A DNA stretch of 64,000 bases from Dimorphilus gyrociliatus. Lineage: Eukaryota > Animalia > Annelida. How positions within the stretch are numbered: the stretch's first letter is position 1; each line of letters opens with the position of its first letter. Made by a program: the position numbers and the translations under genes. Shown here piece by piece: positions 56,627-63,607 of this stretch. The stretch covers positions 310,001 to 374,000 of the forward strand of contig CAJFCJ010000019.1 in the NCBI GenBank assembly GCA_904063045.1. Reading direction: 5' to 3'. The notes beneath the pieces were generated by a model. It saw only the letters and a list, made by a program, of their open reading frames with translations. It was not told where the DNA came from and did not search any database.

Positions 56627-59258
56627 ATGGATGCAGAGATTGGCTTACAGGCAACAAACACTATGACTATAACAGGAATACCAGGTTTCACCACTACTTC
56701 ACTTTTAAATTATATTCTTTTCTGCAAAATGAAGTTAATCAAGCAAACAATGATTAAGAGAGAATAATTTAATTTCTAGGAAATATTAGTCGTCTTTCTA
56801 TTAATCATTTATAAAAATAAATAGGACGCTCAGGGAGATTACCCCCTCTACGTACTGAAGATTTTCATAAAAAGTCACCAAGATATAATAAAGAGGGAAA
56901 AAAAGAAGCAAATCCAGAGATACAAGCAGAAAGAAGGGCAAAAACAACTGTATCTATACCTTCGTTTAATCATTCAGCCCAAGAAAAAAATCCAGGATTA
57001 TCAACTCAGACAGGAGATCACTCAGTGTTAAGAAGCTCATCAACAATGGACAAACGTAAATATTTTCTTCCAATTTTTGCATTATCTTTCCCTTGAATCA
57101 AAATATGTACATTATTCCTTTATAATCTAGCTGTAAGCACACAAATTTTGTTTGTCAGTTTTTCCATTTTAGTTTTAAAACAGGCGTACGACAAACTTAC
57201 GATTACAAAAAACGTAAGATAAAATATTAGTATATTCTTTTAAAAGGCATTTGATTAGCTTTTGTTTAGTTGCTTTTAGATTTTTGATTTAAAAGAGACG
57301 ACAAATATATTATCAAAGGTAAAAGTATTTTTAGACGAATAAGCGCTGGTCTCTTAGCCTAGTTTTGTGTATTTTATTATTTAAATTACCTCATTCCTTT
57401 CAATTTTTGCTATATTGTTTATCATACTTTAGCTATAGTAACAAAAACAATTATAGAAATGAGTTCATTGTTAATTTTGTACTTAAATTATAGATTTTTT
57501 TACTTCTATTATTATTAATATTACTATTTATTTTCATTATACAGCTATGGAAATTGTCGTTTATTTTTCTGATAAAACTGGTATAAGTCTAAATGTTGAT
57601 GATGGAGTAAATGTTACTGCCATGGAATTATTTGATATGGTTTATGAAGAGACTGGCCTACCGAATGAAGGACGGGAAACCTTTTCTCTGTGGCTTATGT
57701 CTAATTTATTGGGTAAAATTTCCAGAATTTATAAGAACTATTCGTAGAAACATTTATAAATTTTAGAATTGCAACTGAAGCCTTCTCATGTCCCTTTCCG
57801 TTTGGCCGCCTTTTGGGAGGATATGCTTGAAGAATACACAGGCGCTGATGATGAAAGAATCGATAAAGGTTTATAGTCTCTCCCTTTATTGCATTTTAGC
57901 TCCAATATATGTCTTTTATCCTGTATAGATGAGCCTATTTTAATGTTCCAAAGAAACGTCTTTTGCACACGTAAAGAAGAACGAGCTGTTAGTTTAATAA
58001 CCCAATACTACGTTCATTCTCTTAAATTCTCATTTTTATTCCTTCAAGATAAACGATACAAGAGCTATAAGCTTATTATTTCACGAGGCTAAAGAAAACG
58101 TAATTGATGGCCGCTATCCTCTAAAGAAATTGGATGATTATCATAATCTTGCAGCTTTACAGTCCCTTATCAGCCATGAATGGTTTGATGCAAAAACTCA
58201 TACTCCAGAATATTTCAAGTATGATTAATTTTATAGATATTTTATTATTATTATCTATATTGTATTTGATATTATTAAAAATCCTAGAACTCGTCTAAAT
58301 CAATACTATCCAGAGCACTTACTTAAAAAGAAATGGTCAATACTTTGCGGGTTTGTCTTTTTAAATAGGATAGTAATTTTTCTATTTATTAATATATTTC
58401 GTTAATATAGCTCTTCAAAAGATAGCTTGGAAGATGGCCTCGTTAAAGCATTACGTCAAAAGGTAAAGAAATTAAAATCAGGCAACTTGCATTTATCTAC
58501 TTTAATGGTTGAATATTTGGATTGGTGTAGAGATAATTTACCTTTTTATGGGTAATTAATACCAACTTATTAATAATTTCTATAATAAAAAGAATGATTT
58601 TTTAGAGGAGCGTTTTTTGCTGGCCAGATTGTTCATCCAAGGAATAAGCTATTAGTAAAACTCTTTGGACAGCCCGAAGATCCGGTCTATATTGCTATAA
58701 ATATGGATGGAGTTTTTGTTATAGATATGGACGACGTCATTTTCTTATTGGGAATATTATATAAGGATTTGAAATGGGAAATAGCCGAAAAAGAAGAAAA
58801 TAAACGGAAGGAGAGTTGTTTATTTTTACAATTTGATCATATGGAAAAAGATAGAGAACAAGAGGTAAAGAAACTATTGCAAATCTTTTCGAGGGAAGCC
58901 AACTTAATGGATGCGCTAATATGCGCAAGTGTTAACAAATTAAAGACTCTTGGAAAATTCGCCGATGACGGCGGTTGGAAAGATGACGGAGATGATTTTG
59001 GTAAGTATATAAAAATTTAATATAATTCTAATCAATTATTTAATAATATATGTTTGTCATTTTTCTCAAACAGATGATAATGTAATTATGCCTTCCGACG
59101 ACATATGGGAGAAACTAAAATCATCATTATCAACTTTTAGTAAATCAGGTGAATTGATTTGATAATAATATAACATTTAGTTAGCATTAACTTGTTTTGC
59201 GGTGAACTTAACTCATTTTTAAACAGGTGAACCGATGGATAATAAAGTTATTGTTTAA
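56627..59258 (+). CDS. FRMD8: FERM domain-containing protein 8 (iTAP), multi-exon, including two 5' exons missing from the ORF track
   Basis: FSLWLMSNLL|ELQLKP, DEPILMFQRNVF, WCRDNLPFYG, FLQFD, LQIFSREANLMDALI. Exons 56627-56684 and 56825-57055 splice in phase to 57545. Confidence 0.88.
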
Positions 59259-59630
59259 TCAACTTCTTTTTATAACTGAACTTCTACATTACCAGTTTTT
59301 CTTTTTAAAAAACTACCATTTTTTAATTGCCTTAATTTAGATGTGAACTTGTTATACTGTTTTTAAGACTTTTTTTAATTTAAGCATCATGTTAGTTTTC
59401 TAAAGATAGATTTTTACAAAAATATACTTTGGTGTTAATTCGTTAAGCAAACTAATACAAATTTTTTCAATATGAAGTAAAATCTGATTAATAAAGATTA
59501 ATAGAGAAAAGGGATTGTAATGCATAGCTCATGATCAATTTCTATAGTTCTATTGTTTTTATTTTTAAAAGAAATAAGCAACTGATTTAAACGTTTAAAT
59601 GAATAAAAGTTTGTTTATAGTCTTGCTTTA

Positions 59631-60645
59631 ATGTCTCTTAAGGTTTTAATTGTTTCTTTGTTAAATTTAACATTATTAGAGGCGCTAATTTGTGCTAAGA
59701 CTGAGTGTAAAATCAATCAAGATTTTACTATAAACTGTCGGAAAGAAGAACAATATGTTTGTAATGAAAATTCATTTTGTTCGATAACTTGGAGTTATGA
59801 AAATGAAACAAATAAAACGGTAGCATTTTAAAAAGTCGTAATAAATTGCACAAAAATTTTAAGGTATAAAGATCTAACAGGGGTTAACTAAGCGACTTGG
59901 TTGTCGATCGTTTTCATCTATTTCGGGACGAGTGTGCAAACAATCGGAAGATGCTTGCTCGGAGCGTCTTACGGGAGATGAAAGGGGGTCGAAGGTTTCT
60001 TGCTGTTGTAATTCGGATTTTTGTAATTTGGAAACAGTAAAAACTGACGCTTCGGTCTTTGAAATTCTCGAGCGGGGTTTAAATGAGCTAGATGAGGGGG
60101 TTGAGTCCAATTGGTTCGTAAATGCGGAAATCGATTTCTTCAAGCAACCCGCAAACGACAGTTCCCTTTTAAGCAAAGAAGAACGGGACGAATACGAGTT
60201 AACGGATCAAGATGTATATATTTTGATAGGGACAATGTATATGACAATTTTCATTCTTTCATTACCCTATATACTATGGGCCACTATGCAAGGTTATAAA
60301 TCCAGGTCGGAAGAGCAGCAGGCTCTCGCCGAAGTGAAAAAACTTCAGGAACTTGAAGAAGTAGCTAGAGAGGATATTAAGAAAGAAGTAAAAACTGTAG
60401 AACGAACGGAAACCACACAAATGAAATGTAACACAGGCTTGAAGCATGAGATGACAGATGGTAGTAGTGAAGAATATGACAGTAAAACGGAAAAGGTATT
60501 ATCCGACCAAGTCGTATGGAAAAATGTTAGACGAAGAATTTTAACAATAGAGGAAGCCATGACCGCTCTGAAATTGACTGTAAATAGCAGCCGGAAAGTC
60601 TCTAACAGTACGGCTACAGAGAGGAGATCAGCAAAAAAAAGTTAA
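59631..60645 (+). CDS. TGF-beta type II receptor-like ectodomain + TM + short tail, no kinase domain (about 317 aa, 2 exons)
   Basis: Signal peptide; intron 59820-59880 in phase 0; 12-Cys ectodomain ending CCCNSDFCN; TM VYILIGTMYMTIFILSLPYILWATM; stop at 60645. Confidence 0.75.
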
Positions 60646-61039
60646 TCTTAACAGATCTTCAATAATAAAAATTGTATTTGCTAAGAATAAATCTATTCTG
60701 ACGTACATTCTTCCCAATTACTGAGGTAGGCAGGTAGTAGAAGAGATTTTTTTGTTGTCATATTTGTTGTAGTTTGTAGTGGTAGTGCGTTTTGTTATAT
60801 CTATTTGTTGATGCAATTAAAGATTCTTAATAAAAGTATCCTATGAACTTGAGTCTCTTGCAATTGAGTATTTAAGAGAAAAATATATCCTTTGGACGTT
60901 GAACGAATTAAAGAGGGAAAGTGTTTGAGAAAACAGTTCGATAGCTTTAAAAACGTCTTATTAATTTAAGAAATAAATTCTAATACCTGGAATTGTTGAG
61001 AAAATCAAAATGCTTTATGCATTAAGAAATTGAAAGAGT

Positions 61040-61978
61040 TTATTTGTTTTTTTTTGGAGTATCTCCTCGAGCACTGAAGAAAGCTAGAGTAATGAGCATA
61101 AGAGCAGCAAGTACGGCTAAAGGCCCAAAGGCCGAAATAGGCGAAGAAGAACTGGAAGATTCCACCTGTTTTACATCGTCCATAACGATCCAAAATTGTT
61201 CACGGATTCCTAAGAAGACGAGTACGTGAAATACTTGATGGCTATGGCCAAATATATCAAAAGTCCCTGGAGCAAACCGTTCTGGAACTTTGCTAACTTT
61301 GACTGCTGCTCCACAGACCAGGAGGAAAACATGTTTCAAGAAACGTAGTCGAAAGTAAGCATCAACATACAAACGAGATAACGCTGGCAAAGAGGCAAAG
61401 GCAAAAGGCAAAAAAAAAGATAGGGTTCGTATATAATGTGCCGATTTCGGTTGACTAACTCTCGTCCAGCAGCAAGCAAATGTTGCGGCCAGGGCAGCTG
61501 CCGATGTTGCCAATAAATACCATTTTGTAGAATGTTCTGTGTTGCCCGTGTAATGATAGTATGCCCTCGCCGTTGCTACCCCATAAAATGATATTGCAGC
61601 ATAATCTAACATGAAACACACTTGCCTCCATCTCCAAGAAACACTCATAAGTAAGTGAGCTCCAGTTGAAACGGCAAACAATGTAAGCACTCCAATTATA
61701 TAAGCGTAAAGGGGATGGTGAGAACCTGGAGCTTGCAAACTTCTAGCATCTCCAAGATCAAGTATTGTCCACCACGCAAAATAGATAAGCGGCAAGGCAT
61801 GAGTCCAAATGTTCAATGTTTCGTTATGCAGGGCGAAAGCTGATGCCAAGGATTTGACAACTCCAACACTTAACGGACGATAGCCTTTGAGAATATATAG
61901 TTCGCGCGCTTCGACTGGCACCTCATTCCAGCGAAGAGCTGGAGGTGGCACCATACTCATGAAACGAATCCTGGACAT
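61040..61978 (-). CDS. PAQR family 7TM protein (membrane progestin receptor-like), intronless
   Basis: LHNETLNIWTH, STGAHLL, CFMLDYAAIS, PERFAPGTFDIFGHSHQVFHVLV. Confidence 0.92.
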   Translation of the reverse strand: MSRIRFMSMVPPPALRWNEVPVEARELYILKGYRPLSVGVVKSLASAFALHNETLNIWTHALPLIYFAWWTILDLGDARSLQAPGSHHPLYAYIIGVLTLFAVSTGAHLLMSVSWRWRQVCFMLDYAAISFYGVATARAYYHYTGNTEHSTKWYLLATSAAALAATFACCWTRVSQPKSAHYIRTLSFFLPFAFASLPALSRLYVDAYFRLRFLKHVFLLVCGAAVKVSKVPERFAPGTFDIFGHSHQVFHVLVFLGIREQFWIVMDDVKQVESSSSSSPISAFGPLAVLAALMLITLAFFSARGDTPKKNK

Positions 61979-62078
61979 ATTTCTCGGACGGCAACTGCAA
62001 CGCCCGAGTGAAGCGCAAAAAAGACTACACAGCGCGCGACGCCGTCTACAAATCTACTGCAAGCAATCAATAAACGTT

Positions 62079-62086
62079 TGACGTCA
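62079..62086. promoter_or_regulatory. Perfect CRE TGACGTCA about 100 bp upstream of the PAQR ATG
   Basis: Read directly. Confidence 0.5.
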
Positions 62087-62295
62087 CAAGGTTGTGGTGG
62101 GTAACGTTTTTCGGCTACACGCATACCCCACGAGTATTAGTTAGCTTTTGAGCTCTGCAAAGAAGCATTGCAGGTGTAGTGCTATTGCTATAAATATAAT
62201 TTATATATAAAGTGGTAGTACTAGTAGCCTGCTGTGTTAGCACAGAGTTGTCCATCAAAAAGGGAAGTACTCATAAATAAATATCCATACTTGGA

Positions 62296-62731
62296 TTAAA
62301 ACGGAAGAACACTTCTAGAATCATTGTTCACACCACATAAAATACAGTCCATCTCATAAAATTGACATTCGTCACCGTATTCATCTTGATCCACCCAAAA
62401 GACGTGCGTATGTTCAGCAATGATGTGCAAACAGTTTGGGCATTGATCTAGAAATTTTCGTTTAGCCTTCCTATGTGCCTTTTTTGTTAAGATATACTCA
62501 CGAGTAAACTTTATCGTTTCCTCTCCATCTTCTTCTAGGACGCTTCTTCCTACCTCTACAGGCGGAAGTCTTTCGGAACATTGTCGGCAGGCTAAATAGT
62601 TGAGAACATAGCATCCGGTATCTAGACAAATGCTCTGTGGATTTTGTTAAAAGGTCGTTATTCCATTTTATTAACGAATGATAAAAACTAACACGCTCGG
62701 GTCTTATAACTTTGACGCAGTCAACACACAT
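62296..62731 (-). CDS. CHURC1: Churchill zinc-finger protein, 107 aa, 3 exons (62731-62693, 62634-62502, 62447-62296); not in the ORF track
   Basis: MCVDCVKVIRPER|SICLDTGCYVLNYLACRQC...LEEDGEETIKFT|HQCPNCLHIIAEH...YEMDCILCG...SVLPF; introns of 58 and 54 nt, both GT-AG. Confidence 0.95.
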
Positions 62732-62887
62732 TTTCTAACTTTTTTCACGTCTGTATCCGCAAGACAATTTTTCGCATTATAAACTGGTAGAAGTTTACAA
62801 CTAAACAACACTATCATGTGACTACTACTACCGCACTATTTTGGGATGTTGTTGGATGAATATTAGTCATTAATCCCCTTGATACTT

Positions 62888-63607
62888 ATGGTACCTATTG
62901 CTCCTCCGCCACCCCCTCTTTTGAGTGGGTCTGCTGAAGGAGAGAGGGTCACCAAGGAGTCAAGTAATAACTGGTCCTACGAAAAGGATTTGAGAAGAGC
63001 AAACGATAGAATTTGGAGCTTTTTAGGCCCGAGCTATGACCTATCTGTTATAAAAACTAATTTTCGACTTCAGAATGGGCCTCAATGCGGCTTAGTCGTT
63101 TTGGAGCTGTGTTGTAATTTGGTGGGAAAAAATTTAAATGTCACTGTTGAAGAATTGTTAAGCGAAAGTCAACGCTTGGGTTTTACAAGATATGGTGAAC
63201 TTTTTTCGTGTTACAGCGCATATTCACTTGCAACAAACTATTTAAATCGCGACAGAGTTGAACTAGTGACTGAATTAACTCCTAACAAACAAGAGCAAAT
63301 GCTGAACGGTTTATTTGATAAACGCTGCGTTATTTTGTTTCCTTATGACAAAGGTCCAGATCATGGTCCTGTTATTCGTAAAGGACACTCAGCTCACTGG
63401 TGCTTACTGATTGGTGCTGCCAAGTCACAACGTGATTTATTGGTTCTAGTTAGGCAAGGTAAAAGTAAATGGATGGGTGTGTACAAATGGAATGATATGC
63501 TAGAGAGCAACAGGAATTTGGTAGAATCATCACCGACTCTGACTCGTGACTTTATTACGAAGCCATTTTGCCTAGCAAATACCGCGATTGTAATATATAC
63601 TGTATAA
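62888..63607 (+). CDS. ACTMAP: Actin maturation protease (C19orf54/UPF0692), intronless
   Basis: Pro-rich N-terminus; QNGPQCGLV (catalytic Cys), FTRYGELFS, FPYDK, GHSAHW, RQGKSK. Confidence 0.9.
   Translation: MVPIAPPPPPLLSGSAEGERVTKESSNNWSYEKDLRRANDRIWSFLGPSYDLSVIKTNFRLQNGPQCGLVVLELCCNLVGKNLNVTVEELLSESQRLGFTRYGELFSCYSAYSLATNYLNRDRVELVTELTPNKQEQMLNGLFDKRCVILFPYDKGPDHGPVIRKGHSAHWCLLIGAAKSQRDLLVLVRQGKSKWMGVYKWNDMLESNRNLVESSPTLTRDFITKPFCLANTAIVIYTV

Follow-up and report, generated by a model that had tools for sequence, protein, structure and literature searches.

A candidate kinase-less receptor look-alike of the activin/TGF-beta-receptor superfamily, encoded by an apparently unannotated gene of the annelid Dimorphilus gyrociliatus

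A stretch of 64,000 nucleotides from Dimorphilus gyrociliatus (assembly GCA_904063045.1, contig CAJFCJ010000019.1, positions 310,001 to 374,000 of the forward strand), referred to here as the window, carries at 59631-60645 on its plus strand a two-exon gene whose spliced product, read from the sequence and the translation of its open reading frames, is 317 amino acids long. The gene is real and belongs to a small family, with at least two paralogues in D. gyrociliatus and orthologues in a related taxon. It encodes a type I membrane protein made up of a signal peptide, an ectodomain, an acidic stalk, one transmembrane helix, and a 120-residue tail that contains no kinase. The ectodomain, of about 94 residues, is most probably a six-disulfide, three-finger domain of the activin/TGF-beta-receptor superfamily. 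The reading we prefer, with a probability of about 0.42, is that this apparently unannotated gene specifies a signalling-dead receptor look-alike of that superfamily. The proteins described below form a real, fast-evolving, and lineage-restricted family that is pseudoreceptor-like and has a putative decoy role.

Exon 1 (59631..59819, 63 codons) begins at the first start codon that follows a stop, an ATG at 59631. It encodes a signal peptide (amino acids 1-18, 59631-59684), the cysteines C21, C26, C36, C44, and C50, the motif FCSITW, and the sequons NET and NKT. The intron (59820..59880), as read from the sequence, is 61 nucleotides long with GT..AG ends in phase 0, and is of about the same size as the neighbouring introns, which measure 54 to 78 nucleotides by contig joints. 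Exon 2 (59881..60645) has 254 codons plus a TAA at 60643-60645; it supplies RLGC, C82, C89, and CCCNSDFCN, which runs to amino acid 112 (60027), and then the acidic stalk, the transmembrane helix, the tail, and the stop. An AATAAA polyadenylation signal (60664..60669) is found 19 nucleotides past the stop. All of these features are on the plus strand.

After its hydrophobic signal peptide the mature protein begins L-I-C, and the cysteine map places the ectodomain, which the intron interrupts, at amino acids 19-112 (59685..60027). Its 12 cysteines are residues 21, 26, 36, 44, 50, 71, 82, 89, 104, 105, 106, and 111, with a spacing of 4-9-7-5-20-10-6-14-0-0-4, and the domain carries three N-glycosylation sequons. 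The only hydrophobic segment besides the signal peptide lies at about amino acids 176-197 (60217..60282; Kyte-Doolittle window above 1.5), and 120 hydrophilic residues then follow (60283..60642), rich in E, K, S, and T and including a helix-prone charged run. A first-pass annotation of this DNA had described the spliced 12-cysteine ectodomain with its CSITW, RLGC, and CCCNSDFCN motifs and a single transmembrane segment, all of which we confirmed in the sequence. The tail and the stop that it reported are also present, but the tail is 120 residues long and not about 105.

An exhaustive HMMER search with exon 2 returned one genuine relative, P0003, a 265-residue protein annotated in GCA_904063045.1 as 'unnamed protein product [Dimorphilus gyrociliatus]' and encoded by a single exon (L001:10001-10798). 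Two other proteins from that search, P0001 and P0002, were rejected as low-complexity false matches. A search with P0003 then gave P0004, a protein of 298 residues present in four Logan assemblies, and word-index protein searches with exon 2, P0003, and the family alignment (A1) returned only P0003 and P0004. The P0003 and P0004 loci each have an SH2/PTB gene and ESSS as neighbours; by this synteny P0004, which comes from a related taxon (runs SRR23372216/28/29/31), is orthologous to P0003. P0003 is probably annotated from a start (L001:10001) that lies too late in the frame: 57 nucleotides, or 19 codons, upstream there is another in-frame ATG (L001:9944), which adds a signal peptide, and the N-terminus extended in this way (P0003x) matches that of P0004. 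Throughout, the cysteine map, the transmembrane call, the mapping of the ligand-binding hot spot, and the paralogue alignment were made on the spliced 317-residue protein, while the Pfam, structure, Atlas, and database searches were run with exon products, P0003, P0004, and alignments.

The spliced window protein aligns with P0003x and P0004 from the signal peptide to beyond the transmembrane helix, with 29% identity and all 12 cysteines matched (phmmer E values of 1e-9 to 1e-10 for a search space of 1.8 billion sequences). Within that alignment, the exon 1 product matches five of five cysteines in the N-terminal halves of P0003x and P0004, and the transmembrane segments of the three proteins coincide, with IG..Y......LS.P in common. 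Since the alignment continues across 59819/59881 and the paralogue has no intron, it validates the splice model. The gene can also be followed at its own locus. In contigs L006 and L007 of the related taxon, where synteny with the convergent PAQR gene is held, the DNA adjoining PAQR includes the last 26 codons of the window gene's orthologue. This fragment has no indel, 15 of its 26 residues are identical, and its stop and AATAAA are at the same positions, unlike the adjacent intergenic DNA, which is full of indels. The two contig segments (L006:3605-3722 and L007:1733-1850) come from different runs and both end at the identical base, 26 codons before the orthologue stop; neither protein collection contained a match to the rest of the orthologue. 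Assembly may be interrupted at that point by a repeat, by polymorphism, or by rearrangement.

The window gene is kinase-less, as the first-pass annotation had proposed. Pfam detected no kinase, and no domain of any kind in the 120-residue tail, and there is no plus-strand kinase exon in the 3.4 kb of window remaining downstream. The relatives have the same short architecture: P0003 and P0004 also lack a kinase and stop after a tail of 70 to 90 residues, about 250 bp short of a convergent gene. The space left between the stop of the candidate and that of the convergent PAQR gene, given earlier as about 395 bp, measures 394 bp. It is extremely improbable that these exons supply the extracellular portion of a complete receptor kinase whose kinase exons lie far away and are joined by splicing. 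In the related taxon both the in-frame stop and the AATAAA are conserved. Downstream come PAQR and Churchill, both on the minus strand, and then an ACTMAP-like gene on the plus strand; none of the three is a kinase, and no joint in the contigs of X1, the one run that covers the locus, leaves exon 2. Operons and trans-splicing are excluded by the D. gyrociliatus genome paper (PMC7854359).

Of the evidence on the class of the ectodomain, the cysteine framework tells us most. A CxxxW strand, a GC pair, and a triple cysteine are marks of type II receptors, as in the ActRII, BMPRII, and TbetaRII sequences, and in ActRII and BMPRII the triple cysteine is produced by a type II-specific extra disulfide. 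The window protein has this framework, with C50-SITW, LGC71, C82, C89, C104-C106, and C111-N112, and so do P0003 and P0004; the ActRIIA sequence used in the comparison agrees with the published F42, W60, and F83. From the central strand onward the family has seven cysteines (C-x3-W, GC, C, C, CCC-x4-CN), and before it there are five. ActRII has three cysteines before the central strand, while type I receptors, BAMBI, and Ly6 proteins have five. To judge from these patterns, the ectodomain would be a hybrid, in which a type II framework is combined with an extra finger-1 disulfide of the type I/BAMBI/Ly6 kind. It could equally be read as a type I/BAMBI framework with the type II disulfide and the W strand added. 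Activin_recp was the sole Pfam family touched, and the contact spans the whole P0003 domain. In the Atlas model of P0003 (predicted local distance difference test [pLDDT] 0.53), which aligned with three-finger domains at template-modelling (TM) scores of 0.51 to 0.64, the two longest alignments (95 residues, TM score 0.63 to 0.64) were with TbetaRII ectodomain clusters. The nearest language-model neighbours were BAMBI clusters for exon 2 (0.88, 173 shared features) and for P0004 (0.91, 183 shared features), and the TbetaRII ectodomain for the P0003 ectodomain (0.86). At the family level each of these signals favours the activin-receptor/BAMBI/TbetaRII group over the Ly6 families of Pfam.

A number of results weigh against the reading of the window gene as a receptor look-alike, and they are considered in this and the following paragraphs. 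The Activin_recp match to P0003 has an E value of 0.0086 and 17.5 bits, below the cut-off of 20.9, over profile positions 3 to 77 of 79, and Pfam gave no match for P0004 or for the exon 1 and exon 2 products scanned separately. Sequence searches of the PDB with the exon 2 fragment, the P0003 ectodomain, and the family profile (A2) found no receptor, and AlphaFold2 run on a four-row ectodomain alignment returned an unusable model (pLDDT 38). The language-model neighbours, with scores of 0.91 or less, are leads only. The remaining structural matches of the Atlas model, at TM scores of 0.51 to 0.62, were with Bouncer-like, PATE, quiver, and other uPAR/Ly6 clusters.

These last matches bear on a different explanation, in which the gene encodes a lineage-specific, transmembrane-anchored surface protein of the Ly6/uPAR type that is unrelated to TGF-beta and acts in adhesion, at junctions, in channel or receptor modulation, or in recognition. 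The type II-like cysteine pattern would then be convergent or an ancient trait of the superfamily. We regard this as a real possibility, though one that we place behind the look-alike. It would account for the only match of the family profile in the PDB, a weak one (E 0.7) to a snake three-finger toxin, and for the five-cysteine N-terminal half and the C-terminal C-x4-CN, both of which are common to Ly6 domains. Fast evolution, confinement to one lineage, and the lost ligand hot spot of the window copy, all described below, fit it as well. However, UPAR_LY6, QVR, and Toxin_TOLIP gave no match at E values up to 10 for exon 1, exon 2, P0003, or P0004, and it was Activin_recp that was touched instead. 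The ten best language-model neighbours of P0004 all belong to the BAMBI, Activin_recp, or ecTbetaR2 group, the CxxxW, GC, and triple-cysteine marks point to type II receptors, and a helix in the middle of the protein followed by a tail of 70 to 120 residues is unlike the glycosylphosphatidylinositol (GPI)-anchored or secreted ends of Ly6 proteins. On fold and class the lines of evidence agree, though weakly. Membership of the uPAR/Ly6/activin-receptor superfamily of three-finger domains is well supported, and kinship with the type II receptors is plausible, on the strength of the framework motifs and the sub-threshold signals. The earlier assignment to a type II-type receptor holds as far as the cysteine hallmarks go and falters on the sub-threshold Activin_recp match, on an N-terminal half that resembles type I receptors, BAMBI, and Ly6 proteins, and on structural neighbours that are Ly6/uPAR proteins as much as TbetaRII.

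The ligand-binding surface counts against the look-alike in a more specific way. To bind ligand, ActRII needs the aromatic triad F42, W60, and F83 (PMC13701385); in BMPRII the triad is Y67, W85, and F115, and hot-spot variants lose binding (PMC9234707). The ActRIIB triad is Y60/W78/F101. The equivalent positions were located through the flanking cysteines, that is, after the C of CxxxW, after GC, and before CCC, a mapping that is robust. They are S51, R72, and S103 in the window protein, F, L, and F in P0003, and F, L, and I in P0004. Because of these three residues, the window copy lacks the aromatic hot spot of ActRII and BMPRII and with it the canonical ligand surface, so a simple ligand sink is less likely than action through receptor-receptor contacts or a non-canonical surface. 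A non-canonical ligand surface is used by TbetaRII (PMC9234707). P0003 largely keeps a hydrophobic surface there and, judged by its residues at these sites, is a better candidate for ligand capture than the window copy.

In this context, it is improbable that the window protein is a membrane-bound trap with an ActRII/BMPRII-like surface by which it captures BMP or activin and keeps it from the signalling receptors. The protein is built like a dominant-negative type II receptor and its cysteine framework is type II-like, and a precedent exists in truncated DAF-4, which antagonises DAF-7 signalling (Gunther and Riddle 2004, cited in PMC2904332). The aromatic triad that such binding requires is, however, the one replaced in this protein. 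The suggestion in the first-pass annotation that the protein is a decoy for BMP/activin ligands is accordingly upheld in its kinase-less architecture and opposed, where ligand capture is concerned, by the S/R/S hot spot.

The family is under constraint, but its pace of evolution also counts against the look-alike. Between P0003 and P0004, the ratio of nonsynonymous to synonymous divergence (dN/dS) is 0.29 (dN 0.27), which indicates purifying selection. For PAQR in the same pair of species it is 0.05 (dN 0.036), with a synonymous divergence of about 0.7. The proteins of the family are thus changing about eight times faster than PAQR, which is unusual for a core developmental regulator. No relatives were found outside the lineage, although the exhaustive search used the exon 2 half-domain only and distant ones may be missed. 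The transmembrane and juxtamembrane segment (L001:10484-10555 versus L002) is 96% identical between P0003 and P0004, and this conservation between orthologues hints at an intramembrane partner. In the transmembrane segment of that pair dS is 0.26, against about 0.9 elsewhere in the gene, over only 18 synonymous sites; noise or constraint at the nucleotide level may lie behind the low value. Between the window protein and P0003 the ectodomain is the best-kept part, with 35 to 40% identity, and the idea that the transmembrane segment is best conserved between these paralogues was rejected, its identity being 27%.

The last points against the look-alike come from RNA. X1 is available as contigs only, and it is cDNA-like in that the introns of the neighbouring genes are spliced. 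Its contig over the candidate is unbroken from 59224 to 62447 and keeps the 61-nucleotide intron instead of skipping it, and with the intron retained the frame meets a stop after codon 66. The same contig (record 3) joins the last exon of the upstream FERM gene, the candidate with its intron, PAQR, and the spliced Churchill exons; it merges transcripts of both strands, and contigs of this type cannot show the absence of a spliced form. The splice remains a predicted one, based on homology and canonical sites and not on reads. RNAs from the two strands evidently overlap end to end across this compact stretch (59224-62447), and the candidate may be covered by read-through or antisense RNA.

It might be supposed from this contig that the locus is a duplicate in decay, or one that is not translated, whose only transcripts are read-through or antisense RNA and which yields no protein. 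The protein collections could be quoted to the same effect: the window gene had no self-match in either of them, by word-index searches or by exhaustive HMMER with exon 2, although the neighbouring PAQR protein, on the 3.79-Mb contig, matches the public collection (NCBI, UniRef) letter for letter. We consider decay very improbable. The exons are intact with canonical splice sites, 12 of 12 cysteines are kept at 29% identity, and the frame, the stop, and the polyadenylation signal are conserved even though synonymous divergence at PAQR, next to it, is about 0.7. The missing self-match in the presence of PAQR points to a gene that the public D. gyrociliatus annotation appears to lack.

If the window gene does encode a receptor look-alike, its mode of action may resemble that of BAMBI. 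BAMBI, type I-like and without a kinase, is to our knowledge the only established membrane pseudoreceptor in the TGF-beta family. A membrane look-alike of this kind would join, or compete within, TGF-beta-family receptor complexes, and a kinase-less protein in such a complex would be unable to phosphorylate the type I receptor. The window copy would do so through receptor-receptor contacts or a non-canonical ligand surface rather than as a ligand sink. A broader proposal is that the family is the dinophilid, type II-like counterpart of BAMBI, a hybrid kinase-less family that tunes BMP/activin signalling, with P0003 acting as a trap and the window copy poisoning receptor complexes, and that it is linked to the reduced ligand repertoire of the animal. 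In this full form we think the proposal unlikely. D. gyrociliatus has been reported to have a conserved set of TGF-beta receptors and a reduced set of ligands (PMC7854359).

The genes surrounding the candidate are closely packed. Upstream on the plus strand (58410-59258) is a gene with a KRIT1/FRMD8 FERM C-lobe (E 4e-8), which has three short introns by contig joints (58551-58604, 59000-59072, and about 59146-59223) and a very small final exon whose stop lies near 59256-59258, some 370 bp upstream of the candidate ATG. Downstream, the convergent PAQR gene (61040..61978, minus strand) consists of a single exon and matches Pfam HlyIII with an E value of 4.5e-36. The Churchill gene (62457-62660, minus strand) lies upstream of PAQR, and an open reading frame for an ACTMAP-like peptidase (62879-63607, plus strand; Pfam 1.2e-29) follows. 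The related taxon (L006) has ACTMAP, Churchill, and PAQR in the same order. The window is about 32% G+C and its introns are very short.

At the least, the gene set of D. gyrociliatus gains a gene missing from its annotation and a family confined to one lineage, and the published conserved receptor repertoire is seen to be accompanied by receptor-like extras. If the look-alike reading is correct, a separately encoded, membrane-anchored imitation of a type II receptor would represent a second way to damp BMP/activin signalling. The family would also be a natural experiment in how far particular ectodomain surfaces are required, one paralogue having the hot spot and one lacking it. If the protein proves to be of the Ly6 type, it would be an ordinary member of a very large superfamily. 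In a literature search that was not exhaustive, we found no description of a separately encoded, membrane-anchored, type II-like pseudoreceptor. The kinase-less type II product reported from C. elegans (PMC2904332) arises from daf-4 by alternative polyadenylation and not from a separate gene.

The window protein can be set beside several known systems. The ActRII/ActRIIB/BMPRII (Punt/Wit) class has the same framework of seven cysteines from the central strand onward, with a spacing of 17/6/5/11/0/0/4 in ActRIIA against 20/10/6/14/0/0/4 here, and proteins of both kinds are single-pass type I membrane proteins. Compared with that class, however, the window protein lacks a kinase, has two more cysteines in finger 1, carries an S/R/S hot spot, and is sub-threshold for Activin_recp. 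The TbetaRII ectodomain (ecTbetaR2) likewise has 12 cysteines and a CxxxW strand. Its cysteines are divided into seven before and five after the W strand, with a C-x-C, whereas the window protein has five and seven with a CCC, and TbetaRII has a kinase that the window protein does not.

Ly6/uPAR proteins such as CD59, Bouncer, and quiver share with the window protein the three-finger fold predicted for it, the L-x-C start, the finger-1 disulfide, and the C-terminal C-x4-CN. They differ in having 8 to 10 cysteines and a CC in place of CCC, in lacking CxxxW and GC, and in being GPI anchored or secreted, where the window protein has a transmembrane helix and a long tail. Truncated DAF-4 of C. elegans (PMC2904332) is similar in that it arises naturally, has a type II ectodomain but no kinase, and antagonises signalling. 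It is, however, an alternative-polyadenylation isoform of the receptor gene itself and is described as secreted, whereas the proteins described here form a separate, membrane-anchored, and highly diverged family.

The overall plan is the same as that of BAMBI: a signal peptide, one three-finger ectodomain of the activin-receptor type, a single transmembrane helix, and a short noncatalytic tail. In BAMBI, five cysteines also precede the central strand and are followed by GC and by a further cysteine ten residues on. The two differ in that BAMBI has 10 cysteines, CC rather than CCC, a C-x-C at the start, and no CxxxW, and in that neither Pfam BAMBI (PF06211) nor BAMBI_C (PF19337) matched exon 1, exon 2, P0003, or P0004 at E values up to 10. 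By this comparison, the window family shares its architecture with BAMBI and the cysteine framework of the second half of its ectodomain with the type II receptors.

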